Assembly: GCA_965113315.1 (NCBI GenBank)
Contig: OZ220363.1
Direction: 5' to 3' (one strand)
Source of the DNA: Podarcis vaucheri
Lineage: Eukaryota
Length of the DNA stretch: 64,000 nt
Position 1 is the stretch's first letter; each line of letters opens with the position of its first letter. This document shows positions 1 to 63,999 of this stretch, piece by piece. The position numbers and the translations under genes are program-made. The notes beneath the pieces are model-generated. The model saw only the letters and a list, made by a program, of their open reading frames with translations, was not told the origin of the DNA and ran no database searches.

Positions 1-309
1 CATGGCATAATCTCACACTTCTCTCCAGTGAGTGGACTGGTCATGCATGGATCTTAAGCTACCAGGGCAAATACATATTGTATTGTGTTCTCCATGCAGT
101 ATGTTCTGCTAGGTAAGATTTTTCAAAAATAAGGGAGTTGTCTGCTCCCTGATTGGCTTGCACTTTGAGTACATGCTTGAGCTGTTTATTTTCTAACTTA
201 GTAGATTTTTAGTATATTCAGCTGGGCTCTGAATAACTGTGTCTCAGGCTAACTATGCAATTTTGTTAGGGTACTTTTCCTTATTCCTTGTACTGTGACC
301 AGTAGATTG

Positions 310-1088
310 CCGTATTTTTCGCTCCATAAGATGCACTTTTTTCTTCCTAAAAAGTAAGGGAAGATGTCTGTGGTCCCTGGAGCCGAATTGCCCAGGGGCG
401 AAAAGCAGATCATGCTTTTTTTTAAAAAAAAAAAAAAAGAGGGAAGTGGGTGTTGAAACAAAGCCACTGATCAGCAAGCGATCAGGAGGGAGATGAGGGA
501 CACTAGCAATAAAGGAGGCTGTCTGGGAGGGGGGAGGTAAAGACAGCGAACTTGGAAGGAGAGGAGACAGGAAGACTAAAGCACTGAGGAGAGAAATTAG
601 AAGAAAAGGATAAGCAAAAAACTGCTCCAGCTAAGGAAAAGACACTAATGCAAACAAGAGGGAAGGGAGTGTTGAAAGGAAGCAGCTGATTGGCAAGCGA
701 TCGGGAGGGAGATAAGGGACGCTAGTGATAAAGGAGGCTGCCTGGGAGGAGGGGGGTAAAAGCCCATGGATCCTCAGGATTTTTGCATTGGGTCACCCGA
801 AATCACATCAGATCACATAGCATGTCCATGGCTACAGCCTGCACCAAAAAAAATCCTGCACCCACCGTTGCGTGGGGCCACAATGGCGCAAAAATGTGGT
901 TACAAAGCACAGGTCCACATGGATCCTCAGGATTTTTGCTTTGGGTCACCCCAAACTCGCCGTCAAATCACACGTCTGTGGCCACAGCATGAACCACAAA
1001 AATCATACATCCACTGTTTCATTCAGAATATTTTTTTTTTCTTGTTTTCCTCTAAAAACTAGGTGCGTCTTATGGAGCAAAACTACGG
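310..1088. mobile_element. Non-autonomous Tc1/mariner-superfamily (Tc2/Kanga-like) DNA transposon (MITE) with internal duplications
   Basis: Terminal inverted repeats CCGTATTTTTCGCTCCATAAGATGCAC (310) and GTGCGTCTTATGGAGCAAAACTACGG (ends 1088). The same TIR family occurs at 37405-37664. Internal direct repeats at ~465-540/~685-760 and ~765-800/~918-952. Confidence 0.7.
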
Positions 1089-2174
1089 TGCTTCTGTAGG
1101 TTAGAATCAGACGCCCTGGTAAATGTGTCAAGGGCCCAGTCTATATATTGCAATAAGTCCTGGTTACTGTGAACTAGTAGCATGCTAATGCAAACTGCTC
1201 AGTAGCTGCCAGTTTGCTGCTGCCCTGCCATGAATGACAGCAATAATCTGATCAAGACACAATCCGCAATCCAAAGTTTGTTCTTGACTTACCGACCATT
1301 GTTCAAGAGAAACAAGCTGTGATTCCAATGTGCATGTTAATGACAAGCCAATCTCCATGGCTTATTGCTCCCATCCATGCTATGGGAAAGTGCGAGTGCT
1401 TGGGCAGTTTTGTTTTTAAGTTTGTGCAGAAAGCTACTTTTGCCCTTCCTGACTGTATTGATTGTGTCTGAGGCTGTACCTCTGCAAGCATTAAATTCAG
1501 AGTCAGTCATCATTAGTGTGTTTGATTTATGGAATCCCTGATGAGCCCAGCTATGATTCACAGACGTAACTATCTCTTTGAAGAGTTTTTACCATCTCTG
1601 TGTTCATGTTTGCTGGTCTTGTTTGCCTCTTTGTAAAGCAAACCAATAAACCCAACAACAAATCCAGCTGACTTATACTACTTTGAATTCTCAGACCTAG
1701 CATAAGGGAGAGAAATTGCAAAAAAAAAAAAAAGAGTTCAGATCTTTTATTTCAAGAGGAGCATCACAGACTAGTATTGGTAGAATAACTTCTCTAACTT
1801 GAAAATTAGCCAATTTTTTCCAATGGCAATCTGCCTTGGGTGCCCTGGAATAAAAAGTGGAGTAGAAACTACAAAAATAAGTAAAACATAGCCTTGCAAT
1901 CTCACCACCCTCTTTGCTTTATGAATGTGACTAGCACCTAAGGTGGCGATGAGTCTGACTTGAGAGTAAGTTTGATTCAGTGGGTAAAGTGCTGAGTCTA
2001 GTCCAGTTCAACCATGAGCTAAGACAACCCTGTAGCTTTGGTTCCCTATTGCATGTGGAAATAACTTCCCCGTGGAGTTACAGTCCAGGGTTAATGAACA
2101 AAATTCTCAACAAACCTCTTTGAAAGTGCTATAGAACTTACTGGCTTTTCCAATTTTGTTTTGTCTCTTTCTAG

Positions 2175-4150
2175 GAGCGTGGGAAGCATTCAGTGTTTTT
2201 ATGGACTCTGATCTCCTCTCCTTAATCAAGACTAAAATATGGAGGCTTCTCCACCCCCTCCTTCCCACTGCCCTCTGCTCTTTCCGGACCCCTTGGAAGG
2301 GACTTTGCCTGCAGAACTCCATCTGGCACACCATGGTATTGGGACCTGAGCTCTGCCTGTGTGCTGTCGCTGCTGCTTGATGGAGAAGCACTGAATGACT
2401 TGGAGGGTGGGAGGGGTTGGTTGTCTGAGCCACCGTGACCAGGGGGCCACTTCAATCCATGGATTCTTGGACCCAAAGAGAATGGTGCTTTCCACAGAGG
2501 TCTCTCGCCTCTTTCCTTTCCGTGGCTTTTTTAGGAGCACTGGGGAAGGAGCCCATCCAGCTCGTCTCCTGCAACAAAAACTGGTGCTTCAGCGCAGTAT
2601 GAGATGTCTGACCCTATTCTCCCCGGAACTCGTGTCCACGGTCCACACTGCATTGTTTTCTTAGGCATCGAGGCATCCATTCCTCCTTAAATCTGATCCT
2701 TTTTCCCAAGCAGCTTCAGTCTCACCCTCCAGCACCGTTGTACACAGCTTAGAAAACAGTATTTCCCTGCTAGGATGGAAGGCAGGCTGGCTGCTTCTTC
2801 GGGTCACCCCTCTTCTCCCTTCCTCCTTTAGTTGCGGGGAAATGTCACCTCCTTTCTACCTGGCTTCTTCTAGAGGGGCCTGCGTCGGTCAACCGGCTCG
2901 CAACGTTGAATCTCCCTTAAAAAATAGATCTGGCTACTGCAGGTCCGCTTTCCACTGATTTGCTAACCATTTTTCCTCGCTTTGTTTCATGCAATAGCTG
3001 CTCCAGTTGTAACTTCTGATGTAAACCTTTGTTTCTGGGGCCAGCCCCTCCCAGATTGCCGCCTTCCTTGTTGTAGAGGAAGTGTTGTGAACGGAGACCA
3101 TCGAATGGAAAGGGGCAAAGTCAAGCTGGGGCTACCTGGAAGTTACCGAATGCAGCACACCCTAAGCATTTTTAAAATTCTATGTGATGTACTTGTTGAA
3201 CGTGTTGATTTAAGGTCCAGAGCTTTCCTTGGCCCCTGCCTCCTTTTAAAAGGAATTCCTTTTTGGAGTGGTTCACTCATGAGTTTGCTTCAGATCGCAC
3301 CATACCTCACTGATCTCTGGCATGCCAGTCTAGGGAGACGATTAGAGACAGTGGGAGGCGTCTCTTCACACCACCATATTTAGCTGTGTTATGTAATCGT
3401 AAGTAGGGTTTCTGGAGCCACTCTAGTCACCAGGCAGCCCTTTGAGACCAGTTGCAGCAAAAACCTGCGTGTTTGGAGCATTATGGGACAAAAGCACCTG
3501 CAGAGTTCTTGATTAAGCTCTCATCCTTGAGTTGCAACCCTACGGGTGTTCATTTTCAGCTTTCATTGCTCCATCCTAGCCTGAGCACCCAGTTACTTAA
3601 AATCAAGGTAACACGTTACACCCTGGAATATGCAGTCTCCAGCAACTGGATCTCAGTAGTGAGGCCAAGCATCTGTTGTGCTCACGAACACTTAATGTGA
3701 TTGTTCAGCTGCATGGTGAAGCCTCCCTTGTAGAAGGACCCTGTTTTGACTCACAGAACAATGTTGTGGCCTAAGGCGGAGGGGGTGGTGTCTGGCAAAG
3801 GATGTTCTTGTGTGATGTGGCACCTCCTTTTGTACTGTTGATCACAGAGGTGCTCAGCTCTAAATGTGGTTTTTTAAAAAATAAAACGGGGAAAGTTGTG
3901 TAAGCAATGGAGTGACAACTTAAACTGTAAAATATATTAAAAATTGATGATTGGAAAAGTTGCTTTTTACATAATGGACATTTTTAGTTTGTTTTGAAAT
4001 AATGGAAGTAAGAAAAGAAAGAAATGAAACAACAGAAACATAGCCTTGGTTCCTTTCAACTCACCCACCCCTGTTCTTCGTGATTTGATTTGTTTGTCTT
4101 TTTCTGATAGGTTGGAAATTGTGTAATAAACTTGATGATATTGTCAATCT
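2175..4150 (+). other. CPSF7: Probable terminal non-coding exon (3' UTR) of CPSF7
   Basis: Strong acceptor ttttgtctctttctag| at 2174/2175, no credible ORF, and AATAAA at 4125-4130 followed by U/GU-rich sequence. Position and orientation match the human CPSF7-TMEM216 tail-to-tail arrangement. The exon start resembles mammalian CPSF7 3'UTR as I recall it; not verified by alignment. Confidence 0.5.
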
Positions 4151-5103
4151 TTTATACTGCATTGTATGGCTTCTTTTCATTTTGTAACTATTTTGAATGC
4201 TGGGTGAGCTGTTTTCTAGAATCTCCACTAAATATGAGCGGGGGACAGGGGGGAGACCTTGATATGGAAAAGAGGATGGATAGATAAGACAGGTGCCATA
4301 TTTTGGCTGGGTAGTAGCCCTTGTAAAACCATGGTTTTATGTATTGCTAAACTAGTTCCAAACCCACTTTATGTACACATATTAAAATGATTTTTTAAAA
4401 AAGCTTCTATCTCTCAGTCATCTCCATTTAAAGGGGAGTGTCTGGTAGCAAGCCAAGGAAAGATTTGAGACCCTTGAGAATTTCTGCCAGTGTGAAATCA
4501 GTACACTGAATGAAGATTTGATGCTCAGCATCATTTTAAGGAGCTCCTTTAAAAAATATTTGCTCTGGAAAACATGAACAGAAATCACAGGTTTCATAAA
4601 AAGGCATAAGCATTATGCTGAACAGAGATGGGGAAATGAAGCCATGATGGAAACAGATGAAACTCAAACACTTTGAAAGGGGATTGTGCCTTTCACGTGA
4701 AATTGAATATTACAGGCAAGGATGCAAGGAAATATAATAGCATATAAGGGCTTTCTATGGCAGGAAAAGGTTCAGTTACAAGAGTACAGTATTGTCCTGA
4801 TTGCTAGTGGTATTCAGTGAAATGTTTCTGGGGATCATAGGCTTGCACAGATGGCTTGTGTTTCACCTTCCTGAAGGTTTGTCATAAAAGGGCATTTGCC
4901 TGTGACTGGCGGATGAGGTGGTAGTACTTTCAGAATGCAGCTTGAGTGGTGAACAGTCTGTGGGAGGGGCTTAATGCTGAGTGGGTGGGTTTACCTGGTT
5001 GCTAGGTGATGATTGTGATCTAAGGGACCAGGATTAATCTCAAGTGAGCCCAGATAACTGGTCTGATGAATGGGTACCATTCAAGTCTCTTGTCATTCTC
5101 ACC

Positions 5104-5409
5104 ATGACATACTCACTAGAATTTGGCCTTGTTAATGCGGCCAACCGGTACCTGACTGCTGAACCTTTCCGTTTCCAGGTGGCAGCCACAGGCAAGCAAC
5201 TGAAGCCTCGCCAGTTGTGGGTACTGCAGTTTGTGAGCCCACAGGGAGCTGGGGCAGCTGGCCCAGGAGAAGGGGCTGGCCAAAAGCTTCACCTGATCAG
5301 TGCACTGAAACGCTACTTGGCGGCTGACGCAAATGGAAAAGTCACCTGTGACCAGGACAAACCAGGGCCTCAGACCTTCTTTCTCTTGCATCAGTATCCA
5401 GATGGCAAG
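5104..5409 (+). CDS. Fascin-like exon 1 (MTYSLEFGLVN...YPDGK)
   Basis: accATG start, fascin N-terminal motif, weak donor AAG|gtgctg (phase 0). Confidence 0.85.
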
Positions 5410-8400
5410 GTGCTGTCTCTCACGCAGGCACAAGCATCCTATCTCTCAAGTGTAGCTTATGTTCGATATTATCGGGCTGGAATTCTGGACAAAGAGGGTT
5501 GGGTGGGTGGGTGAGACGGAGGGCAGAAGGTAGGAAAACAATGCTTAAAGTTGCCTCAAAAGGGCCTCAAAACTATTCCGCTATTACCCAAATGTAGGCT
5601 TCTTGTTTTGCTTACAAATGTTTTTTACAATTAAGAGGCAGAAATGAGGGCAGGGTTGAGCTCGATTTGCAGACTAGTTTGCTGTGGTGAGAAGCAGGGT
5701 TTTTCTAGATTCTTACGGGTAAGTCCAGGCAGCAGATTCCTGCACTCCAGTGCTGTAAAGTGCATCAGGAAGAGTGCAAAATGTTCCTGGACTCCCCCCC
5801 CCCCCATGGTCTCCTTGGGAAGCCAGTAACATGAGCCAAAGCTTTTTGCCCCTGTCGGCCAAACAGTATGATAGTCAGCCACTATGGGCTGAAGGGGAGA
5901 GAATGTATCTGACTAGCTTATTTGAGTCCCTGTGCTAAGAGTTGCCGGGTGTATCCTTCAAGGTGCCCTAGCCACTTCCCATCCACAACTGGAAACAACT
6001 GTTGCACAATGGAACTTGGGTGATCATGGCAACTCCATAAGCCCAAAGGTGTAACGTAACTGGTGTAATGATACCTGAATTTTATTCTGCCATGTTCTTT
6101 GCTCATTGAGAGTATTCCTGCTTTTCTTGTCTTGGGCAATGTAGCTGACCAGACATCTTTCCCTCCCTGCAGGTGTCCTTGCAAAATGAACAGTCCAAGC
6201 GCTACCTGGGTGGAGCAGAGGAGAACGTCACTTGCTTTGCCCAGGCTGCCACCGAAACTGAAAAATGGACCCTCCACCTGGCTGTGCACCCCAATGTTGC
6301 CATGTACAACCCCAACAGGAAGCGTTATGTGCGGTGTGATGATAAAACTGGGGTGCTGCGCTGTGACCGTGACATGCCCTGGGGGGCTGAATCAGTCATC
6401 ACTATCTACTATGATTTCAGAGGTGGGTGGTGGCATTTTCCTATTTTGTTTTCAATTGATATGTCAATTTTTCTCTCTAATACTGTAACACACATCTCCC
6501 CCCCCCCTTTGTTGGGGGAGCGTGTTAAAGAAGCAAAACAAGCTTTCATTCTGCTGTAGGGTTACACACACACACACACACACAGCAATTCCTATTGCAG
6601 ATGAGGACTTATAGCTACCATACTAACAAGAAAGTTGCTTCTTCTGAACTAAGGATTGTTTAAAGTTTTCTGTTATCCTCTCCAACTATGGAGCAGACAC
6701 CTGGGGTAAGTCTGAACACCTGGAAAGACTTGAGAAATTTGAGAGATGGAGAAAGTCTGTACCGGTCACAGGCTTTCTCCTCCCACAGTGAGAAAGTTGC
6801 TACTTTATTCTACAGATGTTTGTCTGCTTGTGATTTTACCTGTACATGAGGATTTCTAAGTGCTACAGGTGGGTGGGGTGGCCTGGGAAGGCAGTAAGTG
6901 CTTCTAAGTGGAAGGTCTTAATTCAAAAAGTTTGAGTGACACTGCCTTATTTACACATCTCTATCCAAAGGCCACCCAAGCACCTTCTAAGATAGTCCTC
7001 TGTTATTGATGTGTGAAAAAGTTCAGTTTGAGTCATTTGCATCTCCTCCAATAGGTCTGGAGTCCAATGGTGAGAGAAGGCAATTTTCCCCATACATACC
7101 AGGTGAATTCAAATTCTGTTTACCCAAAAAGTCACTGTGGCTGGCAGGAATTTTGATTTCCTTGACATCATTAATTAGCCTGGGTAATTCTTAGAACTAC
7201 TAATTGCCCTATGCAAGACTTTCTGGTAAGTTAGACACCAGTGCAAACTTTCCAAATAAGGCAAGAAAGGGAATTGTCTGTGCAGTGAAGTTTCCAAGTG
7301 CAAATCCTCTTTCCTGACCGTATTGATGTTGGAGGTTCCCCACTCTCACACACACACTTTTAAGTGAAATTGCACACTAGGCTAAATAATCTAATACAAC
7401 CAGTTTTTAAAACACACATGTAGTGTGGATAAAGGTGTGTATTAGTGCAGATGGGAACATGACTTCAATCCCAATCTCAGCCTGCATGTGCCCATGGCAC
7501 ATCTCACTATACCTGGGTAGGGGGTCATGGCCTCTAGCTTTATCAAGCAAACATGTAAACCCCCAAAGTAATTATGCAAGAAAAATAGGGTGTAATCTAC
7601 GAGGAAACAAATGCAGTATCAGCACCACCAATGCTGTACAAAGCTGAGGCCCAATGAACCTCAACTTGCCTATCAGAACAAAGCATGGGGGCTGTTTACA
7701 CACATGTACAAATGATATATGAGATTCTGGGTAAGGGAAATACAATGGGAAATGTTAAGGGTGAACAGGACTAGCGTGCTCTAAAGGGTTGGTGTTTGGA
7801 ACTGCAGGCAGGGTGGGTTTGTGTGGCAATCCTGCAGTGAAACAAGCATCAGCCCTGATGCTGCTTTGTAAGACAATTGATTTGGAGATTGTTTTCCAGG
7901 ACTGAACACCAAGCTGCTGTCAACCTCTCATCTCTCTCGCCTTTGTCTCCAGCAAAGAAGTATGGATTGAGGAATGGGGCTGGCAAACTGTTGGCTTCCA
8001 ACGGCTCACTGGTACCAGATGTTACCCCACAAACTTTGTACTCCCTGGAGGTGCATGGCGGCTTGGTCGCTCTGCGGGATGAGGAGGGAAAGTACTTGAC
8101 TGGGCGAGAGGGTAGCATGAGAACCGTAAAGATGGACAAACCTGGACGGGAGGAACTCTTCAGCATGGAATCCAGCCCTGCCCAGGTCTCTATGCGCTCT
8201 TCTTCTACTAACAAGTTCATTTGCTGCAGGCCAGGTAAGTCAGGAGAAAACAGTACTATCTATATTGCATTGCACTTTGTGGAGCCTCTGCAGCTGATTG
8301 GCTTTTCCGATCTGATGAGATGGAATGTTTGTGACCATTTCACCTGCTCAGAAAATGAGGCACAGTGGTGGTCCACATTCTGCGAGCAATGGGGCAGTTG

Positions 8401-11400
8401 TCAGTTTGGTTGGGTAAAACTGAGATAAGACTGACTCGGGAGGCAGGGTGAAGGCTGGGAGGAGTTCTTAGAAGGCAGGTAAGCTTAGATGCTGGGACCT
8501 GAGAGGCAAGATTGCTGAAGAGAGGATGCAGAAGTAAGAAGCAGAAAAAGGGCACATACAATTGAAGTAGCAAGGATCCAGTAAGATTACGGTCCCTGAA
8601 AAAAACCACAGCATTTCTTATTAAAAGTGGTGTGACAGAAGTGCTAGGGAGGCTAACCAGAATACAAGATGGCCAATCGAAATGGGGCTAAGTAGGCTGT
8701 GAGCTGAAAAAGCAAAAACCTGAGGAAATGAATGGTGTAGCTATAGAACTAGGGCAAGAAGACTGGAAGAAAACCACACAAAGTGCTTTGACTAGAGAAA
8801 CCCAGGATGGAATTTAATGTCATTTTAAGGCGATTGTTCTGCTTCCCAGATGAAGTGATTTCACCTTTCCCACATACTTGTTCGGGGGTTGTCTTGAACC
8901 TGCAGAGCAGATTTGGGGGGCCATGGGAGAAGCCATGTAGCCAGAGATCTTCCATCGGGCTCCCCTGGTGAGACAGGTTACTTGAATCCACACACTGCAC
9001 TCCTTTGGAAGAAACGAAGTACAGCAAGCCAGCAACTTACGGCACATTTAACTTGTGCACAATTAATCCAGATCTGAAAGAGGATTTGAATTTAGGCTTG
9101 CACGTGACGTTTTGTGCTCTTAAACCAGCCTGCCTCCAAAGATAAAGATAGGAAGGTCCAAATGATCCTAGGTCAGTTGACACACAAACAATGCCCCCAT
9201 TCTCTGCACAATGTTTTCCTCTTTCGATCCATGAAGCACTGATTTCAGCCTGCAGGAGTGGGCAATGGCATATGTAGGAATGCTGACCTCGGGTGTTTCT
9301 TCCCTGCCCCCTGCAGGTGCTGATCTCTATGCCAATGCTATGGCTGTCGGCAACACCGAGATCTTCCAGGTGCTGTTTGATGACACCACAAAGAAGGTCT
9401 GCTTCCGTAGCCACAGCGGCGCGTATATGTCCTTGGTGAGTGTGCCTGCCACGCATTACGAAGAACAGCAGCAATCAGGCAGGACCAGCTATTTCAAATT
9501 GTTTCCTAACTATGGAGAAGGACTGCAGTCCGTAGGTGGTAGAGCACATGCTTTGCATGCAGAAAGCCCCAAGCTTTTTTCAGCCACAGCCACTCAGTCC
9601 AGTCTTGTCCCCAACCTCCTTCTGACTATATTCTACAATGGGCAACACTGAGACTAAGGAGGGAGGAAGCTGACAGGCAGCCCCACCCCACGACTGGTTG
9701 TAAGTGAGAATGGGGGGACTGATCAAGGGCAGAGTGAGGATGGTGGGGCAGGGCCCCTTTTGCCCAAGTGGATCAGCTTCCACTGGATACACCTGTGCCC
9801 AGATTGTGGTGCACTAACTTAATCTGGAATTCTTTTAAATGTGAGCAAGGAGGTGGGTGAGCGGCATCCTTGACGCTTGGCTGCGATCATTCACAAAAAT
9901 TGTGGCCTGGTTCAAAAAACAAAACGTCGTAAGCTTGAAACGATGTAGTAGAGGCTTTGCCACCTCAAGTGTTCACCAAGTCTCCCCGGATGAAGAAGAT
10001 ATATCTGCGCCATGTGTGTATTAATACAGAAAGGCAGGCTGCAAATCAAGAGGATAATAATATAGCAAGCAGAGAACTGATAAAAGGAGGCTTGTTAAAT
10101 AGCAGAAGATAGCTCTTGGTCCTGGACTTGTTTGTTAATGTTAGTAAGGGCTGTCTCAGGCCTTTTCCAAAATATTTTTGTCAACTTTAGTGCGGGTGGG
10201 GGGAGTTACTCTATTCTACAAAGCAAAACAGGGCATTATACACAATCCTCCTTGTGTAAAAGTGGAAAATTGTTTTTTGTACACTGAGGATGGAGAACCT
10301 GTGGCTCTCGAGTTGTTGTACTCAAATTCCTATTGTCCTTGATCATTGGCTGGCAGTTATTACTCCAACATATTGAAGGCCTCAGGTTTCTCATCCCTGC
10401 CACAGATGAAATATGTAAGTGTGCAGTAGGAATGCACATCTTCCTGAACAACCTCTTAAGAGAAAGCTAACTGCTTAAGCCTGGAGCGCTGGAGACATCT
10501 TTTTCAGGTCTGCTATTCACTTACCTGGGAGTAAAACTTGTTGAACTAAATGAAACTTATAAGTAGAGTTGAAGGTGGTCTTCTGGCTGCATTGTTCATG
10601 GTGTGCACATACACTATCTGCTATGAACCCAGTCAGAAATTTTGCAGATTTTTGTTGTGCTTCAAAACCTATACTGCACATCTAACATACCATTTAGAAA
10701 TCTTATAGTTTGGCTTCAGTCTGGGCTATGGTTCACATAGTGCAACTTGAAGTGTGAAGTCAACAATAAAGTGGCTTTGAATAAAGCCAAGGTCCACCAC
10801 CCTCCCTAGCTTGCTGATGCTAGAAACCTTCCCCTTTTGGAGGTAACTGCTGCTGGACTAACCTCCCTGGTATTGAGAAGCTCATGCATTGCTGTACTCT
10901 TGTGTTGCGTCACCTACCACAATGGAACTCTCAGTCTTGATGCAGCACCAAATACCTTCCACTGAAAATATATCAACATGGATCTCAGAACGTAGCTGAT
11001 AAAGGGACTGCTACAGAAGGTTTCTATCAGTCAAAGTAACCCCAAAACACAAAAAGCACTTTCCAACGAATGCATCCTGTCTTTTGCAGGGTCCTAATGA
11101 CTGTATTAACAGCAACACCAAACAGGACAGGAATGTCTGGTTCGACATCCAGTACCAAGACCAAAAGGTGTGTCTCCGCATAGCAGACAAGCAAGTGTCC
11201 ATGCGGCCCAATGGACAGCTCCTGGCAATTCCCAAAGCTGCAGGTACAAGTTGGTAGAGAGCTTCTCTTACAAGCACCAGGGCATCAGTGTGGACAGGTG
11301 AACACAGCTAGGGTGGGAAGAGAGACTGCACACTGCCAGCTGCAAATTAGCTTTAGGTAGTTCTAGGGGAAAGGACTGGAAGCGACAGCCTTGCACTAAC

Positions 11401-13154
11401 TCCCTAGATAGCTCTCTAGAGGAATAATGTGGGGAATGTCTTTGCACAGAAACCAAGCTGTCCCTGGATATAAAATTGGAACATGGGGAGCCAACCTTAA
11501 GCCCATCCTGTGAAATGGCTTTTTAGACACCTCAAGGGTTTCTTGTTGGAAACCAGCAACCAAAACTTTCATAATCTTGCTCTTGCAAGATGGAATGAGT
11601 TCTGTTTACACTCCCTTCCTTACACTTTGGAGTAGCTAACATCACTACAAATACAGCCTACATGAAAGAGAAAAAAACACCCTAAGACTCACTAAAACAC
11701 TGCCCCTCTGTGCATATAATCCTGGCCCCCAGAACTGCATACCAAGTAGGTTGACATTGCTTCTGTAATATGATCTGGGAAGCAGTCAGAGAATGAGTTC
11801 CAGTTTGGGGGGAACCACCACCAGAAACAGATGTGCAGTTGTTGTCCATAGTGGTTACTTGAATGAACTTTGGGGCAAATGCTACTGACAGTAGAAATCA
11901 GGATAAAACCCAAGGGAAGAACAGTATTTGAAGTCCAAGCCATTAAAAGCTTTCTGTGCCATAAGCAGCACCTTGAATCAAGTAAGAAAGACTAGAGGGA
12001 GATATTGTGAATTCTAGGCCCCTGTTACAACACTCAGCCTGGCTTCTCAGTGTGGGGTGATTTCTCCTGATCTTTAGCACTGAAGTTGACTTTCCCTGGG
12101 GAGCTGATTCCCTCTTGAGAGCAAAAGGAAGGGTGGCAAAATAGTTCTCTTTGAAAGCCAGGCCAATGCTAAAGGTTTCCCTTGTACCTTCAGGGAAGAG
12201 TGAAGATTTCCTGCTGGTGCTGGTGAACCGGCCACTGCTTGTCCTGCACAGTGATGCCGGCTACGTGGGTCTGTGTTCTGACATGAGGAAGCTGGAAGGG
12301 AACTGCGTCAGCTATGTTGCCAGCAGCCTGTCGCTCACCGAGGAAGGCTACTACAACTTCCAAGTTGGTTAGTATGTTTCCAGGTGGGACTAAGTATATC
12401 CCAAGGGGTTGGGGTCTCCTAGTATCTGTGTTGCGAGTGAAACATGACCTACTCATAAATGGGAGCTGCCATCAAAGGATTTTTATAAAAACAAGCCTAG
12501 TTTATACGTAGCTATAAGAGGGAGCCAAAACTTGCTTTCCCAAACCAAAACAATGCAAGAGAGCGCATCATCACTATTTCCCCCCCTTTGCCCTTTGTTT
12601 TGCTCCATGACCCCTGGACAATAGTTTCCTAGGCCCAATTAAGGATAAACTACTGTTCAGGTTGGATGGCCATCTGTCATGGTTGATTTAGCTGTGATTC
12701 CTGTGTTGCAGGGCGTTGGACTAATGACCCTTGGGTCCCTTCCGACTCTCTTATTCTAGGTGTCGATCATGTTTTCACTTTATACATGGTTTCTTTCTAA
12801 ACCATACCTAGTATTGCCATGACAAGCACATCCTAATTACCTGTGATTCTTTTACCTCGTAAAAGTCAGAGAGATCCAAGAGCTGGTCTTGCCACACCTC
12901 TACCTTCCCTGACCCTCACCCTTCCTTCCACTAATTCTGCCACTTGACCTGCAGGCAGCAAGTACTGGGCTCTGGATAACGATGGACAAATCTTGGTAAA
13001 CAGTGACCGTCCCAGCAATTTCACCATCCAGCTTGCATCCTCCAGCTGCCTGATCATCAAAGCACCCAACAACAAGTTTTTTGTGGCTGAGCAAGGAGGC
13101 CGACTATGGGCAGGGGCTTCAGACGCATCTGGAGCAACACTGTTCCATTTCTGA
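5104..13154 (+). CDS. Fascin-like actin-bundling protein (four beta-trefoil domains), 7 coding exons, 494 aa; divergent paralog not clearly FSCN1/2/3
   Basis: Exons 5104-5409, 6173-6422, 7953-8234, 9317-9435, 11090-11243, 12194-12367, 12955-13154. All introns are GT-AG, phases are compatible, and the 1485 nt are open. Fascin motifs throughout: FGLVNAANRYLTAE, KRYLGG..CFAQ..EKWTLHLAVHP, DRDMPWG, ALRDEEGKYL, FRSHSGAY, NGQL, LVNRP, SKYW, TLFHF*. Start context accATG. Confidence 0.92.
6173..6422 (+). CDS. Fascin-like exon 2 (VSLQNEQSKRYLGG...IYYDFR)
   Basis: Acceptor ccctccctgcag|, donor G|gtgggt, fascin homology. Confidence 0.9.
7953..8234 (+). CDS. Fascin-like exon 3 (AKKYGLRNG...ICCRPG)
   Basis: Acceptor tttgtctccag|, donor G|gtaagt, fascin homology. 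Confidence 0.9.
9317..9435 (+). CDS. Fascin-like exon 4 (ADLYAN...GAYMSL)
   Basis: Acceptor ccccctgcag|, donor TTG|gtgagt. Confidence 0.9.
11090..11243 (+). CDS. Fascin-like exon 5 (GPNDCINS...NGQLLAIPKAAG)
   Basis: Acceptor gtcttttgcag|, donor G|gtacaa. Not in the ORF track; translated by hand (WFDIQY..VCLR..NGQL). Confidence 0.88.
12194..12367 (+). CDS. Fascin-like exon 6 (KSEDFLLVLVNRP...YYNFQV)
   Basis: Acceptor taccttcag|, donor G|gttagt. Confidence 0.9.
12655..12760 (+). mobile_element. CR1 LINE 3' end fragment
   Basis: Resembles a CR1 3' terminus (gttggactaatgacccttgggtcccttccgactc...attcta). Confidence 0.55.
12955..13154 (+). CDS. Fascin-like exon 7 (SKYWALDND...TLFHF*)
   Basis: Acceptor acctgcag|, TGA at 13152-13154, AATAAA at 13181. 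Confidence 0.88.
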
Positions 13155-13180
13155 GAGCATCTGACCTTGCTCTTCCCACC

Positions 13181-13186
13181 AATAAA
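13181..13186 (+). terminator. Proximal polyadenylation signal of the fascin-like gene
   Basis: AATAAA 27 nt after the stop, followed by U/GU-rich tttttctgtgtgg. Confidence 0.7.
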
Positions 13187-13570
13187 CTTTTTCTGTGTGG
13201 GCTTACTTCATGCTTATCTCAACTGATGCCCAATTGGCCCATGTGTTAGACCTCTTGGAAATGACCCTTCCTCCGTAGATCCTCCCTCACACAGGGCATA
13301 CTTGAACTCTAAATGAAAGCTCTGCTACCTACAGCAGACCCAAGCCAGGACCCTTTCATATGAATTTCCTTATGCAAAAACTTTCTGTGCCCATGAGGTC
13401 CCTTCTGAAGCACCTTCCTGCAGTTAGGATGATTTGCAAAGCCTCAGTTATCTTAAAGATGTGTACCTCTCTTCAGCCCAAGAGGGGTCCCCCCATGCTT
13501 CTAGGAGCACTGCTGTTCTCCCAGTGTACCAATGTTTGTCTTAAGCTCCACATAGCTTCAGTAGTTTAAA

Positions 13571-14420: not shown

Positions 14421-17400
14421 TTATCCCTGTTGTATTCCATTGATTCCCCTGTTTGAAGAAATAAGCCAACCAACATAAATATATGATAAGCCACCTGTGC
14501 AATTTAGCATTACATCATTGAGCCTGAATGAATCAGAAAAAGAACGTCAAACTTGCATGTTCTCCCACAACGGCCAAGGAGGACTTCAGCAGGATTTTAT
14601 GTTCTCTATTTAATTAAACTTTTAAAGAATCCTAGCTTAGCATTATTTCTGAATCAGGAATCCTGGTTTAAAACTCTGGTAAGTGCCATAATAAATCAAC
14701 TTTACACTATGGGTTATAAAGTTGGCTTCTTAAACGGATCAGAGTTACAGTATACCAATTTCCAGAGAGTATAACAGAAAGGCTTGCATTCAACACAGCG
14801 CTAAGAAGAAAGATTTCTCCTTGTGCAATTGAGCATATTCCCCACCTGCATGCCCCTTAAATCTGCTCTGGGAATGGCATGGAGCACAGAAGTCCCACTG
14901 TACTAATACTAATCCTTGCACTAGTGTGGGTATTTGGTTGAATATTGTCCAGTCTTTGGGGGACATTAAAGGCTAAGCTAACACATTTATTACAGCTTAA
15001 GCTAGTCCATGAAAACTTATGCCATAACTAATTTGATACTTTTTAATGTGCCACAGGACTTTTGTTGTTTTAAACCAGGATCCTTGGTTCCAACATGATG
15101 CTAAACAGGGATTATTTAAAAGTGAAAGTAAATCCTTCCACGTCCTCCCAGCCATAAAGGAAGGGGATATGGGGACTCACACACGAGCCTGAAACTTCAC
15201 TTAGACCTTTCCATATAGCACTAAGCCCAACATTACATGTAAATACAGTCAGTGTCTTAAAAAACAAAATCTAATCAATGCACATAAAAAAATATTTCCC
15301 TAAAATACCATAATGGTAGGCAAGTAAAGTACCTGGAGAAGGCAGCCAGAGTGAGAACACCCAGTAACAGCTCCACAGCATAGAAGAGGAGGAGGATAGC
15401 ATTAAGGATGGCCTCCAGCCGCAGAGCATAAGTCTGCAGCAGCAGATAATAGGCTGCCATCATTGCTGCTGGAAAGGTTAAAGCCAGACTGATAGCAAGT
15501 GGCACTTTCCGTTGACAGAGGTTCCCTTTTGAGCCTGCCATACACAGAAAATATTAAAAAGAAAATGCATAGACCTGTTCAGCATAAAAGCCACAGTATT
15601 TGGAATCTGATGGCACAAAATGAATAGCTCTACTTTTCAGGGATCAGTTCTCATTTAACTAAATAAGTCAAAAAATAACTCATTTAACTAAATAAGTCAA
15701 AAAATTGTCCAGTAGCACCTTCGAGACCAACTAAGTTTGTTCTGGGTATAAGCTTTCGTGTGCATGCACACTTCTTCAGATACACTGAAACAGAAGTCAC
15801 CAGAACCTTATATATAATGGGAGGTGGGGTGGGGTATTTCTCAGAAGGGTAGTAGAAGATGGGTGATTGACTCAATGGGTATGGTAAATCTGTTGATGAC
15901 TGAACAATTTTGTATTAAAAAATTTTTTTTTTTAATTTTTAAAAAAAATAAATAACTTTTTTTAAAAAACACATTTATTTTATTTCGACTGCGTCAGACC
16001 AACACGGCTATCTACCTGAATCAAGAATCATTTAACAGAGAATAAGGAATGGGATTTTGCATTTAACATTTGTACTGTAGTTCATAAGCTAGTCTCAGGT
16101 CAGGAAGGACAGTCAGACTGGATAAATGGGATCTCATATTTCCACCCACATAATGATGTCTTGCCTCCTACCTACTCCCGAATTAAGGGATGTACCACAG
16201 AGCCCCTTTTTCAGCCTCATTTCATTGGAGGCACCTATTCCAGTTCAGCAGAATAATTAGGAAGGCCTGGAATGATGGAGTGAAGGCACTGTCAGCAATT
16301 TACACTCTGCTCAACTACTCTACTCTCAAACACCTTTGCTGTTGGAGAAGCGGAATTTATCGATGAGTGAACCACCTTAACAACAACAACAATAAATTTT
16401 ATTCATATCCTGCCCATCTGGCTGGGTTTCCCTAGGAGTCATCTTTTCAGGTCAAGTGCCATCAAAGATGCTCACAAAATGGCAGGTGAGTGCACTACTC
16501 GTGGGAACATTTTTATTGAATACTCACCAAAAAATATCCGGGTCACTTCAATCCCAAGATAGAGAAAAAGCATAATCAGGTCCAAAGCCAAATTGGCAGA
16601 GGGGTAGGGCAACAGGAGTCCTAAGCGGGTACACAAATGGACATGTGCATTAAGAGAACAGCAAAGCCAGATGCCTCTTCCCATTTAATGAATTCCTTAA
16701 TAAAAGAAGAGTGTCTGATGTTGGTTAACATCTAATGTAGCAGCTAGAATGACAACAAACGCTGGGACATGGATGGTTCTGAAAAAGGCTGTGAACTCTT
16801 AAGCAGCTAGGTGAGAAATAAATAATTACACTATCCACTTTGTTCTTTCACTTTCTTCAGGCGAGAGCCACAAGGTAAATGCGTTAAAAAAGCCTGCAGG
16901 CAACCCAAACATATCACCCCTTCAAAAACTCACCTTTATAGACAAATATGAAAATCTCCAACAGAAAATATGTTGCATAATACCAGCCGTTCAGGAACAG
17001 GAGAATCTCCAGAGGGGTGGAGGAGAGCTGGCGATCTAGGGGGTGAAACCAGAATATGATTATCTATGGGGTAAACATTTTGTGTCCCCCTGCTTTCCAG
17101 CTGAATCAGAGCCAATGGCAATTCTGGTTTTCCCAGGACTGCCATTTGTTCCAATCTATCCCAAGGTGGGTTTTCCCTCAGAAAGGAGCAGGGCAAAGGG
17201 TGTGAGTCAAGCAGAAACTGCTGCTAAGAAGCCAAGCAGCAATGAGACAGTCTCAGTTCTGTTCTAAACTCAGTCAACAGAGACCGGTGTGAGGTGAAGA
17301 TTGTCAAAATGGAAGCCCCGAGATGACAACAGCCATTAGGGGACGCCAATATTTGTACAGGGCTGGACAAGGGCACAGAACACAAGCCTTGTGTGCAGCT

Positions 17401-18006
17401 ACTCTTCATTTCGCCTTTCTTGCATTTGGGGGTGTACTGGACGTTGTGAGCTCAAATTTGGGATGCTGCGTCCTCACCAGCTTAGCGTGGAACCTCAGCA
17501 AATGGTCTAACATACCTCAGGCAAAGGGAAACCAACCAGCAGCAGGGAATAAAAACCCCAGGCCACCGAACTGAACCCCTTGGAAGGGTCCAAAACCCCG
17601 TATTTGGGCAGCTTTACGCTAGGAGAGGGTTGCGAAGGGGCAGCCTCCGGCAGGACGTGGTTTTTCTGCGGAAGCTCAGCGCTAGGCTGAGCCAAGAGGC
17701 CCCTCATCAGGCTCTGGGGACCCGGGGGCCACTCTGCCTCCCTCCCCTTCGCTCCGGCTATTCCTCCCGCCTGGGGAGCGCTTGGCGGGATGCCGTCGGA
17801 TCCCCGCCGTCGCTGCCGGGCTGCAGCCGGAGCCCGGTTCCTGTCCCTGCTCCAGGGCTCGGGGTGTCCTGGGCGGCGGGCCGGGCGAGCGGGGTGGGAA
17901 TCAAGAAGAGCCGAGCCTTCCACGGGGATCAGTCGCGGTCACGTGACCTCGCAGCCCCCAGGGCCCTAGGACGCTGCCGGGACCCCGACTTACTGCGAGG
18001 CGCCAT
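14421..18006 (-). CDS. TMEM216: Transmembrane protein 216 (ciliary transition zone, MKS module)
   Basis: Exons (minus) 18006-17994 (MAPR), 17035-16934 (RQLSSTPLEILLFLNGWYYATYF...YK), 16620-16528 (LLLPYPSANLALD...IFF), 15534-15333 (SKGNLCQRKVPL...TLAAFS). The short terminal exon is uncertain; best candidate is 14448-14421 (RGINGIQQG*). Confidence 0.9.
15005..15070 (+). mobile_element. Degraded Penelope-like element terminal fragment
   Basis: tccatgaaaacttatgccataactaatttg...gtgccacaggacttttgttgtttt resembles reptile PLE termini as recalled. Confidence 0.4.
15700..16025 (-). mobile_element. Penelope-like retroelement remnant in TMEM216 intron 3
   Basis: gtccagtagcaccttcgagaccaactaag...agctttcgtgtgcatgcacacttcttcagatac and cagaccaacacggctatctacctgaatc resemble squamate PLE terminal repeats. 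Flanked by catttaac duplications. Confidence 0.65.
15746..15783 (-). ncRNA. Minimal type I hammerhead ribozyme-like motif (PLE-associated)
   Basis: Minus strand reads GUAU-CUGAAGA-A-GUGUGC(AU)GCACAC-GAAA-GCUU-AUAC: core boxes, perfect stem II, stem I GUAU/AUAC and a palindromic AGCU stem III. Confidence 0.6.
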
Positions 18007-18400
18007 CTTCCATCGCCATGGAAACCGCTACGCAGGAAACCCACTTCCGGCGGAGCTCACGGCACAAAAGCGGGAGAGGGCGCAGTGGCGCGCAGCGTTC
18101 GCGGAGGCAGAAAGGTGTGGGTTGGCAAGGCGCGCGCTCGCTCCCTCGCTCCCAGCACGTTAGACCGAATGGACGCAGAGCAGAGCCGCTCTATCCCTGG
18201 CCTCTTTGTGCCGGAAGACCCGTTAGAAAGGCAAAAAGCTGCATTCGATGCCGGATATCGAGCCGCGTCTCTTTGGGGCGGAGGCCCAGATTCCGAGCGG
18301 GGACGGCGTCGCCTCGTCTCCATGGTAACCCATGAATGCTACCCGCGCTTCCTCCGCGCGAGTTGTGGGGGCAGGAAATAAACGCGGGGGCTCCTTCTGA
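17600..18400 (-). promoter_or_regulatory. TMEM216 CpG-island promoter with RFX X-boxes, ETS, YY1 and E-box motifs
   Basis: CpG-rich. GTCTCCATGGTAAC at 18316-18329, partial X-box ccatggaaac at ~18016-18025, ccggaagt (minus strand) at ~18043-18050, AAGATGGCG at the ATG, GTCACGTGAC at 17938-17947. Confidence 0.8.
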
Positions 18401-22600: not shown

Positions 22601-25367
22601 ACCATAAGAGGGCAACTATGATGGACGATGCAATACGTTAACTTAGGGTACTTTGTGTGATTTGCTATCACATGAATACAGTATTAACAAAATGTACAAT
22701 AGACCACTTAAATGACAGCTTAGGCAATTATTGCAAGGCCAATCATTTTTCATGGATCTCAGACACAGATATCTAAAAAGAATAAATTAATGTGAGCAGA
22801 AGTCAGTGTAACAAGATGTCCGAAGAAAACAAGAATAATGGAGCACACTGTAAATTATGCTCATCAAAAGCAAAAGAAAAGTATGCTTGTTCAAAAAGAT
22901 CTTAGAAAAAGAAGTGATTGGTATGTATGCAAGAAGTCCAGGGTGTGATGGTGAAGAACGAAGGACAGCTGAGAAAAACAGAACTGCCCCAAAGGGGGGG
23001 GGGGACACTGGTCAAAGAAGACTGTAAGGCCTCCTGTATCCAGCTAACCCTATCAGTAGGAAATTCTAGCTTTATACTAACAAGATTCTGAAAGGTTGGA
23101 AGGTGAATTAACATGCCAAGCCACAATAATATATTGCATTATAACAGTTGCAACAGCTAGGACCCCTTCCAGTTTATCCTGTTTCATCAGACGAGCTTTT
23201 AAATGTCTTAAATACTATTTGGTTTATCTAATCCAACTCCTTCCCAGGTCTTTATTCCTGGGAACTCCTCAACCAGTTCAATGAGACAGCTACTGTTCTA
23301 CAAATTTTGCACACATTATTTATCACACAGAAGTTGGTACAAAAACCTGAGCTTCTTTTAAAAATATAATGAGTGTTGAAACAAATTTGGAAATCCACAG
23401 GTGGTGTTTGCAAGGGATTCCTAGGGTTCAATAGAGAGCACTTCTATCTCTTCCACAGCTACCTGTTGTAACCTAACCTGTTAGTTTCTTCTATTCATCC
23501 CTGCTCTTGCACAACATTTCTTCCATTTACCATACTGCTTTTTTGTTACATCCAGACCTCCATGTTTAAAAACTACAGAGTGCTAAACCTGGAGGGAGCA
23601 TAAAATAAAGTTTGTTTCAACGTGTGTTTTCTTTGCTTGCACAATTACTCCTGTATTCAGAATCTGGGCTTCCTTGATAACCAGTATAAACAATCCTCTC
23701 CTGCCTTACCATGACCCAGATGTGGAAGGATATGCTCAAACCAAGGTATGTTGCTGACAAGACAATGGTCCCTTTAAATTTCTGGAACAGAAGATTAACC
23801 AGGCCAGCCTGGAAGACGAAGGTATTGAAGAACATGAGGAAGATGATGATGACATTGAAGAGGATGGCAATATCCTGAATGCTGTAAGACAGGCAAACAT
23901 TTTAATGAGACAGAGATTGATAGATACCTTATACACAGAGGTGTACCTAGGTTCCCTTGCATCCTTGGCATCACACACACACCCTGGTCCCTTGCACAAT
24001 TGCATTTCTCCACCGAAGCACCCACAGGAGCCTGCATGCTTTGCCCAGCCACCCATAGTATTGGAGGAGCAGCCCAGGGAGCACACGAACAGGAAAGCAA
24101 GTCCCTAGCCACTCCAAGCCAGAGTGGAGAGGCACAATTTTTGTGCACACTCTCCAAGCCTGCACTCTTGGCAGGGGCTCACCTAACCAACTCCTAGGTA
24201 TGCCCCTGCTTGTGGCTCTCCAAATACTACTGGACACCAGCTCCCCACCACCACCCATGGTCATAGATAATGGGAGTTGTGGTCCAGCAACGTTTGGAGG
24301 GCCACAGGCTCTCCACAATTGTGGCTCAAGCCTAGTACTTGGAGAACAAAAAGCAGATTAACATAGCTGCAGAAGTTTTCACTGTCCATGCTGCCAAGTG
24401 AGACATTAGTCCACTAATTGCAGAGGAAAGGGAACCCCGAAACCCTTTCTAGAAGATTACAATGGAAATAATACCTGCTGCAGCTATCTCTATTTCCCCC
24501 TGCTTATCACTCATTTTCATAATCTGAGTGTAGAACTTTATGTAATGGCAATTGAGCTAACAGCTGCTAATACCCACAGAGAAAAGATAGAATGAATGGA
24601 TTATAATAGCACCACCCCTTTAAAAATATCATTCAACACAATACAGCCTACTAACTGCCGATGTTTCAGGAGTAGGGAAAGAATAATAATTTTCTTGGTA
24701 TCTTTTATTCTACTTCATTCCTCCATTCATCTCTTCTCTGGCACTCTCTTCTTCCCATTTTCCTGAATGAGAGTGTCCCAAGAAGAGTAGAAACAAACAG
24801 AAAGTGCATTCCTGTGCATGTTTACTCAAAAAAGTTCCACTGTGTTCAATGTGGCAAATTCTCTGTAATCCTAAGCACATTTACTATGGATCAAGTCCTC
24901 TTGTATACATAAAGGCTTAAGCTGCAATCCTATGCACACTTACACAACAGTAAGCATGACTGAAAACAATGGGACTTCCTTCAGAGTCAAAATAATATAT
25001 AAGATTGCACTGTTGCTCCTGAGTAGACATACTAACCATCTCTTCTCCATTCCAATTCACTTATTCAAGCACTAGTATACAGTTCTATCCAAGGACCTGA
25101 AGAGTAACCACGTTTTTGATCCCTACAGCTTATTTAAGAGCTCATAGCACTGTTGAGCATCTTTTCAGAGACAAATGTATACAAGCCCTTTAAAAAACAC
25201 CCAGACAGTGACAAGCACCCACTGTTGTGCCATACTCACATGAAAAGCACAAGCTGGATGACGGGCGCCATGCGCAGCAGCTCCGAGAAGGAGTTGACAA
25301 AGAGGTCATAGAACAGCAGTAGGAACTGCAAGGAAAGCACCAGGCTATAGTTGCTGGTTTGGAGCAT
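19613..25367 (-). CDS. TMEM138: Transmembrane protein 138 (ciliary trafficking; JBTS16), 162 aa
   Basis: Exons (minus) 25367-25240 ([15 protein letters not shown]), 23881-23710 (IQDIAILFN...HIWVM), 20027-19952 (NLRWKNSN...FQRM), 19725-19613 ([31 protein letters not shown]...*); 489 nt in total. Non-coding exon 1 donor at 26059. Confidence 0.96.
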
Positions 25368-49985: not shown

Positions 49986-52900
49986 ATTTTCTCACCTTAT
50001 AGGTATCTAGGCAATCTGGTATTTTACAGGCCTCATTTATGTAATTTTACATAGTTTTTAATGTTACACAATGCAGAATTAGACAATCTCAACCAATATT
50101 CTAACAAGGGAAACTTACCAAGACAACGCACAGCAGACCCAGCCACTACACTTAATTCAAGGTAGGATAACCCACCCAAATTGTTCACCATCAAGACTAC
50201 AGAAGCACCTGAAAGCCAAAACAAAGTAAGATTGAAGACTAATCTGCACACTATACTTAATATGCAAAAGGTGATGTAAAAAGCTTCTGCATGGCTATTT
50301 CTCCCCATCTGGGCTAACATCTGGATCTACTGATCAATGACTGACCAATCACACAGTAAATCTCCATTCCAGCAATTGCTGATATTGTAATAGAAACTCA
50401 CTACATAAACGTGATTTTACAAGCATTTTTGTATATATTGTACTGTATATATATTACAGTTCAGCTATAGAAAAATAGCCACAGAAAAAAAATATTCCCA
50501 GATTCCTCAGAGTAGAAGGAATAATATATAGGCCAGCCTCAAAATTGTTACTTACCAGACTTGAGTCGCACACGTGAAGCGTTGGAGTGACTGGTCATGT
50601 GATCCAGCATTATTTTGACAACCTGATCTGCTGATGTTATCTGTGAAGAGGACATGTGTAAGGGGGCAGGGTTGTACTTCTTCATTAGCAAAAAGGTGAC
50701 AGGCTACTTACCTTCATCCTACGCACACCTGCTTCACCATGGATTCCTACAGAAAGAGCAAGATATCAGATATCAGTTATGGCACCTGCCATGACTATCT
50801 TCTTTCTAAATAGAAGATGACTGAGTTTAAGGGCACTAATTGATGAAATCCTAATCATGCTAGTCAGTGATATATAGCCATTGAACTTAAACTACACACA
50901 AAAGAAAAATAGTAAAAGAACATATCTGTGCCCTGTTAGTATCTGACTGGTAATGGATACCCATGCATCATAGGTGATAGCACCTCAGACTGACCCCTAT
51001 GTCTGCAATGATGGAATGGAACTGGTCACAACTAATAATTCAGAGCATGGACAGAGTCCCAAAACAAACGGCATGCAGTCCCAAAGAGACAATGCTCATG
51101 AGGACATTCTAAAGAAGTAGATGGAAACGCATTCCTCACCTAAGCCTAGCTCAAGTTCATCATCAGCAAGCTGGAAGGTAGGTCTAGATCCAGGAACACT
51201 GCAGGGGGTTAGACTAACTCCAAGGGTCCCTGTGCAAAAATAAAATGCCACCTTCCATACAGATGTTTCAGCATCAGTACAAGAAAATAGACAAAAGTGT
51301 ATGTTCTGCTTATGCCCCCGGTTACAATGCACAACTCTAAATGATACTACAATATTGCAATGTAGTTTTGGATTGAAAGGTGCAGTCTTGAGGATCACCA
51401 GCTAATTACAGAAACATTATTTGTTCATATTAATTAAACTTATATCAAGCTATCAATGGCTAGCTATTTTACCTGCATTATCAGAGGCAGCATGTTTCTG
51501 AATACCAGTTATTAGAGATCATGAGTGGCAGTGTCTTATTGCACCTCTGTTCTGCTTATGGAATTCCCAAAGGCATCTGGTTGGGAACTTAGGGACCACA
51601 TAGCTGGACAGATAGGTCCTCGATCTGACCCATCAGTGCTCTTCTCAAGTTCTTATACCTCACCTTTTCCTCCAGTGACCTGAAGGTGGTGTATATGGTT
51701 CTCCCCATTTAATCCTCACAACAATCCTGTGTGGGAGGTTAAACTAGGCGATGGTGAATGCTGAGTCCAAATCTTATACATTAACCACAAAGGGTCAGCC
51801 ACACAATTGGGGTTCTCTTTCTTTCAGGGATCATTAATTTTAAATCTTCACTACATTCACTGCATGTCAAAACCATAAACCCTATAAAAGACAGCATAAT
51901 AAATTTAGCCAGCATGACCTTGCTAGACTGCTTGATTTGCCAGGTGTCAAAGAATAACGTAGCCTTTGGCCAGATGCTTACCTCCCAAAGAGAGCTACTT
52001 AAACACTTACCCATTGAGTGTGCAACAGCAGTAACCTTGCGAGCAATTGCACTCAGACCACAACCTGCCTCAGACAGAGCCCCAGCTACCTAAACATAAA
52101 CAACTGTAAGGAAAAATGTTGCTTTGATTTCTCAACAAAAGGATCACAGCAGATTAGCATACATTCATTCACTTCATACTACAGGGACAAAGCCAGGTGT
52201 GTCAGGACTAACGGAGAAGAATGGCTGTGTGAAGAATCATGCTTTTATGTGGCTAGGAGTTCAGGCACAATATGCAGGGAGGAATGCCTATGGGCACCTC
52301 ACACTCTACAACATTCTTAGGCCTCAAAGCATTATTTGCACTTTGGTAATACTACTGTACAGTGGGGTCCTAAGTCAATGACAATGTTGGTTCTGAATTT
52401 GGGGATGGATGATTCCTACCTTGTGTATTAACACTGTGCCACATAGACCTCTCCTGCCAGCCTTCTTCTGTTTGGTAAAGGCACAGTCGTCACCGATAAC
52501 CACCATCTCCACAGAAGCCCCTTCTGCCCGTGCTTGTTCCAATGCCAGCCCAAAGTTCAGACGGTCCCCAGTATAGTTCTTCACTATTAGCAGTGTCCCA
52601 ACTACAGAAGAGAGATGGTTTGAATTCTGTGATATTCCTCCCTCAAGAGAGATGTTCATCTACCAAAAATGATGCCATACCTGCACCAGCTTGCCTCACA
52701 GCCCGAATTGCTGCTAAAATGCTGCCCACTGCAGGTGAAGTGAATACCGGACCAGCTACCACTCCAGTGAGCATTCCCTTCCCAATGTACCCTGAGGAAA
52801 GAAGACAGGCATGGCGGTATTGCATCTGCTTTGGGAGCATCTTGCTCACACTCTAGTTCTGTGGCTGTTTATCTTAACTCCAATAACTGAATCGTACAGC

Positions 52901-55549: not shown

Positions 55550-63999
<8,450 letters not shown>

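Follow-up and report, generated by a model that had tools for sequence, protein, structure and literature searches.

The 64,000-nucleotide stretch of Podarcis vaucheri DNA considered here (the window; contig OZ220363.1 of assembly GCA_965113315.1) contains a fascin-family gene on the plus strand at positions 5104-13154. A splice-site fit on the window sequence gives seven exons that join into an open 494-residue protein. The gene is real, expressed and old, and has so far been recorded only in annotation, as 'fascin-like'. Its orthologues form a group of vertebrate fascins that we call clade X. The gene consists of the following features.

5104-5409, plus strand: coding exon 1, with the ATG at 5104 and a GT donor; residues 1-102, i.e., most of beta-trefoil 1 including an amniote-specific GAGAAG loop; Pfam Fascin match at 8e-10; 100% match to P0001
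6173-6422, plus strand: coding exon 2, flanked by AG and GT, entered in phase 0 and left in phase 1; Pfam Fascin match
7055-7102, plus strand: alternative cassette exon of 48 nt, in frame, encoding GLESNGERRQFSPYIP; flanks aatag and gtgaat; matches the insert of Lacerta agilis P0148
7953-8234, plus strand: coding exon 3; Pfam Fascin match at 3.6e-9; RNA contig 7951-8236 at depth 643; RNA joint 8234/9317
9317-9435, plus strand: coding exon 4; RNA joints 8234/9317 and 9435/11090, contig depth 213
11090-11243, plus strand: coding exon 5; RNA joints 9435/11090 and 11243/12194
12194-12367, plus strand: coding exon 6; RNA joints 11243/12194 and 12367/12955
12955-13154, plus strand: coding exon 7, with TGA at 13152-13154; Pfam Fascin match at 3.7e-6; covered by an RNA contig
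13155-13493, plus strand: 3' untranslated region, minimum extent, with AATAAA at 13181-13186; the RNA contig extends further

The spliced coding sequence comprises 1485 nt (494 codons plus TGA) and has no internal stop. The introns interrupt the protein after residues 102 (phase 0), 185 (phase 1), 279 (phase 1), 319 (phase 0), 370 (phase 1) and 428 (phase 1). All introns run from GT to AG with pyrimidine-rich acceptors, and the stop-free stretches of the plus strand between 5.0 and 13.2 kb encode fascin-like peptides. Exons 1, 2, 3 and 7 match the Pfam family Fascin (PF06268) at or over the curated cut-off, and exon 1 on its own retrieves human fascin-1 from the PDB with an expect value (E) of 7e-18. 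Single window exons or public orthologues served as queries in the database searches, and the joined 494-residue protein was used for local alignments and trees only. These data bear out the seven GT-AG exons and the uninterrupted 494-residue fascin proposed in a first-pass annotation made from the letters of the window. The Kozak-like start that it described is also there (caccATGa, with A at -3). The polyadenylation signal that it mentioned is an AATAAA 27 nt 3' of the stop codon, but it is not the sole 3' end and perhaps not the main one. An RNA contig record covers 12954-13493 and then about 1.1 kb more, well past the AATAAA at 13181. The 3' untranslated region may thus be longer than this signal implies, or an unstranded assembly may fuse it with the convergent 3' end of TMEM216.

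The exon set proposed in the first pass was right as far as it went, but it missed one more coding exon, the eighth, which lies at 7055-7102 and is used alternatively. The L. agilis orthologue P0148 has 510 residues owing to 16 additional residues inserted at the boundary of exons 2 and 3, and the window sequence aatag/GTCTGG...ACCAG/gtgaat encodes this same insert in frame with the phase-1 junctions. Akin inserts are present in the annotated proteins of Python, Erythrolamprus and Eublepharis, and in several species the 494-residue forms are named "isoform X2". The segment is a squamate cassette exon conserved in sequence, and its inclusion is predicted to produce a 510-residue isoform. In the AlphaFold2 model of P0148 the cassette loop occupies residues 187-201 at the surface of trefoil 2, with a predicted local distance difference test score (pLDDT) below 50; inclusion of the exon would thus add a disordered loop to this trefoil. 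A separate low-complexity insertion, GAGAAGPGEGAG, is located in trefoil 1 (window 5242-5277, plus strand; protein residues 47-58). It is found in all amniote members of clade X and not in the frog, sturgeon or shark members, and it also models as a loop with pLDDT below 50.

Transcription was assessed by comparing positions 7700-13500 of the window (5,801 letters) with four RNA-seq runs. Two of them, X1 and X2, are two samples from one study of a related lizard; the remaining two are raw reads from a second species (organism B). The contigs of run X1 are 92-99% alike to the window. One of them, 2133 nt long and at depth 213, jumps exactly from 8234 to 9317, from 9435 to 11090, from 11243 to 12194 and from 12367 to 12955. 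After the stated cut offsets, these four joints coincide with the predicted GT..AG intron edges, and exons 3-7 are joined. Exon 3 is represented by a separate contig at depth 643, while intron contigs have a depth of about 7. Spliced RNA, the lack of which the first-pass annotation had listed among its refuting conditions, is present in X1 for exons 3-7. For the two remaining junctions, exon 1 to exon 2 and exon 2 to exon 3, support comes from the annotated L. agilis and Varanus proteins, which have the same residues on both sides of each. Over the same positions, run X2 has only unspliced coverage of about 6x with no exon enrichment seen, and the two raw runs from organism B contain zero exon reads. 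The gene is thus spliced as predicted, and its expression is restricted by sample, since X1 is strong and the other three runs are without exon enrichment. A segment of intron 6 (12550-12743) is covered very deeply in each of the four runs (contigs up to about 485, raw RNA up to about 8.6). Its reads continue into unrelated sequence, and it therefore behaves like a transcribed interspersed repeat.

Orthologues of the gene are widespread. When exon 1 was compared with 1.84 billion representative sequences, six close matches were obtained, the weakest being P0006 (E 1.7e-35), and the next match was lamprey P0007 (E 2.3e-17). A clear gap in E values sets the clade X members apart from every other fascin in the profile search too. 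Homologues were listed by cluster look-ups, one single-sequence search and two profile searches, the profile lists holding the best 120 of 138 and the best 120 of 161 matches. Orthologues predicted as "fascin-like" or "fascin" occur in at least 17 squamates: Lacerta, Podarcis, Varanus, Anolis, Phrynosoma, Hemicordylus, Tiliqua, Salvator and four geckos, as well as the snakes Python, Liasis, Crotalus, Erythrolamprus, Naja and Laticauda. They are also found in many turtles, Alligator, the archaic frogs Ascaphus and Discoglossus, the sterlet, and, among cartilaginous fishes, sharks, rays, a sawfish and Callorhinchus. No clade X member from a bird, mammal or teleost was among the matches listed, even though these searches extended to invertebrate fascins at 30% identity. 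The window protein differs from L. agilis P0148 at 5 of 494 residues, and the turtle Lepidochelys olivacea has a product of 513 residues. The automatic 'fascin-like' loci (L. agilis P0148, Anolis XP_016851051, Alligator P0138 and Scyliorhinus XP_038666649) are direct orthologues of the window gene. P0148 shares its cassette exon and shows no substantive difference from it. The suggestion that the gene might exist in databases only as such automatic loci is therefore borne out: the window adds one further species to those in which this unstudied gene had been predicted before. The literature searched contained no description of a fourth fascin or of 'fascin-like' genes in vertebrates. The idea of a lineage-specific actin-bundling system was too strong, the gene being common to most jawed-vertebrate classes.

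The main maximum-likelihood (ML) tree was built from 42 sequences and 491 columns under LG+C20+F+G4. It supports all vertebrate fascins at 100/100, FSCN1 at 99/98, FSCN2 at 100/99 and clade X at 100/100. Clade X, FSCN1, FSCN2 and the lamprey fascins form an unresolved four-way split within the vertebrate fascins. In a second tree, to which L. agilis FSCN1 and turtle FSCN2 were added, clade X again has a support of 100. There it is sister to FSCN1 at only 92 by the Shimodaira-Hasegawa-like approximate likelihood ratio test, and the approximately unbiased test cannot reject a grouping with FSCN2 (p 0.28). Cartilaginous-fish sequences fall in both clade X and FSCN1, and ray-finned and lobe-finned fish sequences fall in FSCN2. 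Because fish sequences are present in each, the duplications that gave FSCN1, FSCN2 and clade X predate the jawed vertebrates or sit at their base. Clade X is an old jawed-vertebrate lineage that arose before the split of cartilaginous and bony fishes and is separate from FSCN1 and FSCN2. The window protein is excluded from the FSCN1 crown (99/98) and from the FSCN2 crown (100/99). It is 35-37% identical to FSCN1 and FSCN2 (chicken and turtle FSCN2 about 35%), and the strong divergence from both that had been noted in the first pass is borne out. The lamprey fascins are grouped weakly. The lamprey 'fascin-like' sequences P0016 and P0135 represent a second, very divergent lamprey fascin of odd amino-acid composition. 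They group with the other lamprey fascin at 83/31, and the tree leaves open their place relative to clade X, FSCN1 and FSCN2.

The gene is under purifying selection. Seven of the eight exonic differences listed between the window and the related lizard of run X1 are synonymous. This is a clear excess, as 22.8% of possible changes are synonymous (P 2e-4; P 3e-3 when transitions only are counted). By the RNA contig table, divergence is about 1.2% in exons 3-6 vs. about 3.3% in introns. Squamate orthologues are 81-89% identical, a range like that of FSCN1 (86-88%) between the same families. Over greater distances the window gene changes much faster than FSCN1: its identity to turtles is 61% vs. 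85% for FSCN1, and to chimaera 44% vs. 78%.

The protein is predicted to fold as a fascin throughout. The 96%-identical L. agilis orthologue P0148 (E 2.5e-94) and Varanus P0143 (E 7e-101) can be aligned with human fascin-1 over their whole length. The AlphaFold2 model of P0148, made from the clade alignment, is all-beta with four beta-trefoils (pLDDT 83, predicted template modelling score 0.80). It matches the fascin-1 structures 3p53, 7zau and 1dfc over the full length with template modelling scores of 0.82-0.90 and E of about 1e-42. The window protein and fascin-1 (1DFC, 3P53, 8VO5) share the length class, the four tandem beta-trefoils and the 35-37% identity from end to end. In the alignment, F29, K41, R149-K150-R151 and K247 of fascin-1 are retained as F, K, R-K-R and K, and K22, K43 and K358 are each replaced by R. 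S39 is replaced by Q and S274 by C; the S274 position is C in all bony-vertebrate members of clade X, and the S39 position varies across the clade. Several of these positions are the targets of fascin-1 mutants held in the PDB, namely 4gov (S39D), 4goy (K41A), 4gp0 (R149A/K150A/R151A) and 4gp3 (K358A). Fascin-1 is inhibited in its bundling when protein kinase C (PKC) phosphorylates S39, and its other known phosphorylation site is S274 (PMC7698196). The two serines regulate fascin-1 and do not define the family.

Since the targeted basic residues are kept (K41, R149-K150-R151, and K358 as R), the window protein would act, like fascin-1, as a monomer with two actin-binding surfaces that hold parallel filaments together in tight bundles. 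With Q and C in place of the two regulatory serines of fascin-1, it is improbable that bundling is switched off by PKC phosphorylation; control would more likely be exerted through the site of expression. In contrast to fascin-1, the window protein has an amniote-specific 9-residue loop of the GAGAAG type in trefoil 1 and an alternative 16-residue loop in trefoil 2. The genes differ as well. The window gene has two extra introns in the part that matches FSCN1 residues 1-279, its intron 3 lies at the point where the FSCN1-like read-through model P0019 departs from the FSCN1 sequence, and it adjoins TMEM216, unlike FSCN1.

We consider, with a probability of roughly 0.9, that the interval 5104-13154 is a functional gene, the lacertid member of clade X, and that it encodes an actin cross-linker of the fascin family with 494 or 510 residues. 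Several observations weigh against this. Clade X has evolved about three times as fast as FSCN1 over deep splits, and its stem in the main ML tree is about 1.0 change per site; because of both, its function may have shifted. The bundling activity of its members is proposed from homology alone, and in the end-to-end alignment with human fascin-1 (E 7e-101) residues R398/K399 and K471 are apparently not conserved, which we take to be part of the actin-binding surface of fascin-1. Expression is documented by a single sample from a single related species. Turtle models are often incomplete at 126-433 residues (P0004, P0124, P0006, P0127, P0142, P0153), which may reflect decay in some turtles or merely poor annotation. 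The incomplete turtle models and the lack of exon enrichment in three of the four RNA runs, including the two with zero exon reads, would suit a decaying or non-functional locus with a fortuitous open frame, or an annotation artefact. We regard this as very unlikely in view of the frame that is open across seven exons, the spliced transcript at high depth, the synonymous excess among the substitutions and the squamate conservation of 81-89%. Even less credence can be given to a reptile-specific gain, in which the gene would have arisen recently from FSCN1 or FSCN2, by duplication or as a retrocopy, or would be the orthologue of one of them at a new place. Nothing was found in its favor. The breadth of the orthologues and the trees refute it, and with it the 'gained in reptiles' option of the first-pass annotation: orthologues exist in chimaera, sharks, rays, sturgeon and frogs, and in the ML trees the protein nests inside neither the FSCN1 nor the FSCN2 clade. 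A retrocopy is ruled out by the six to seven introns. A translocated or duplicated FSCN1 is opposed by L. agilis, which keeps its own FSCN1 (P0310, 36% identical to the clade X protein).

The functional gene of clade X can be related to mammalian FSCN3 in two ways. We slightly favor the view that FSCN3 has its non-mammalian counterpart, an orthologue or pro-orthologue, in clade X. The gene would then have left the vicinity of TMEM216 for the PAX4-ARF5 interval in the mammalian stem and diverged fast as a testis gene, and the lizard gene would be 'FSCN3 at its older address' and no fourth fascin. FSCN3 and ARF5 lie beside PAX4 in mammals only (PMC3563606), in keeping with such a move. The taxa appear complementary, since the clade X matches listed come from cartilaginous fishes, sturgeon, frogs and reptiles and include no mammal, and a single relocation is more parsimonious than at least four reciprocal losses. 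FSCN3 and clade X are both divergent branches of the vertebrate fascins, FSCN3 being 29% identical to fascin-1 (PMC7698196). The expression of the window gene, strong in X1 and absent in the three other runs, may parallel the restricted expression of FSCN3, and the chimaera member P0165 is labelled 'fascin-3 [Callorhinchus milii]' in nr. Human FSCN3 presumably resembles clade X in its seven coding exons and in some short motifs. One such motif, APNGxY, was considered as specific to FSCN3 and clade X and rejected: it occurs in invertebrate fascins as well and is thus ancestral and uninformative. The genomic loci differ: the window gene does not lie between PAX4 and ARF5/GCC1, its neighbours being TMEM216, TMEM138, TKFC and DDB1. 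This mismatch is still compatible with FSCN3 orthology, the PAX4 arrangement having been described for mammals only. Also against the counterpart view, annotation pipelines name the clade for fascin and not fascin-3, entries derived from UniProt and Ensembl bear no projected FSCN3 name, and the ESM Atlas places its fascin-3 cluster no higher than its fascin clusters. The tree and alignments comprised no FSCN3 sequence. None was among the matches listed, either for exon 1 against the 1.84 billion representatives or in the homologue searches, the unlisted tail of which may hold one. The PDB search gave fascin-1 as the only fascin and no FSCN3 structure, and the supplements of PMC3759438 and PMC13450315 contain nothing on FSCN3. 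The argument leans on a restriction of FSCN3 to mammals, outside which it is not known to occur. The other, less favored view sees in clade X a fourth vertebrate fascin in its own right. Separate from FSCN1, FSCN2 and FSCN3, it would be an ohnologue that dates back to the genome duplications of early vertebrates, was kept at its ancestral address beside TMEM216 and was lost independently in mammals, birds and teleosts. This corresponds to the 'ancient and lost in mammals' option of the first-pass annotation. It is consistent with an age of clade X equal to that of FSCN1 and FSCN2 and with the four-way split that includes the lamprey fascins, as products of genome duplication would show. The locus, unlike that of FSCN3, and pipelines that use similarity and synteny and gave no FSCN3 assignment argue in the same direction. 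In addition, DAGLA and CYB561A3 at human 11q12.2 have paralogues, DAGLB and CYB561, at 7p22 and 17q23 near FSCN1 and FSCN2, a putative paralogon that would suit an ohnologue that never moved. The fourth-ohnologue view demands the loss of FSCN3 in every non-mammalian lineage plus the loss of clade X in exactly the mammals.

Vertebrates are stated to have three fascins (PMC7698196). Either there is a fourth old fascin lineage that is absent from mouse, chicken and zebrafish, or FSCN3 has deep relatives elsewhere, and either outcome would help to date and explain the fascin duplications. If clade X is the counterpart of FSCN3, a poorly understood testis fascin has slower-evolving relatives at another locus, from sharks to lizards. 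If it is a fourth ohnologue, the textbook 'three vertebrate fascins' are what remains in mammals, and an actin bundler with neither of the known phospho-switches has gone unstudied in reptiles, sharks and sturgeons. In addition, structure-function work would gain from clade X a naturally occurring fascin that lacks the S39 and S274 switches. The gene does not represent a new kind of molecular system, and its locus is already predicted in public annotations.

The neighbouring genes were identified by Pfam matches.

15278-16684, minus strand: TMEM216
23620-23901, minus strand: TMEM138
52378-52659, minus strand: TKFC
57829-59809, plus strand: DDB1

TMEM138 and TMEM216 stand head to tail in the window, as they do in human and mouse (PMC9169668), and the fascin gene is convergent with TMEM216. 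The gene had been placed inside a conserved CPSF7-TMEM216 block. The TMEM216 side of this block is confirmed by the four genes above, but no CPSF7 coding sequence was found in window 1-5100, and no arginine-rich tail either. Long G+C-rich stretches that are open in multiple frames occur at 17500-18400, at the 5' end of TMEM216, and at 55400-56900, between the divergent TKFC and DDB1; both are typical of CpG-island promoters.

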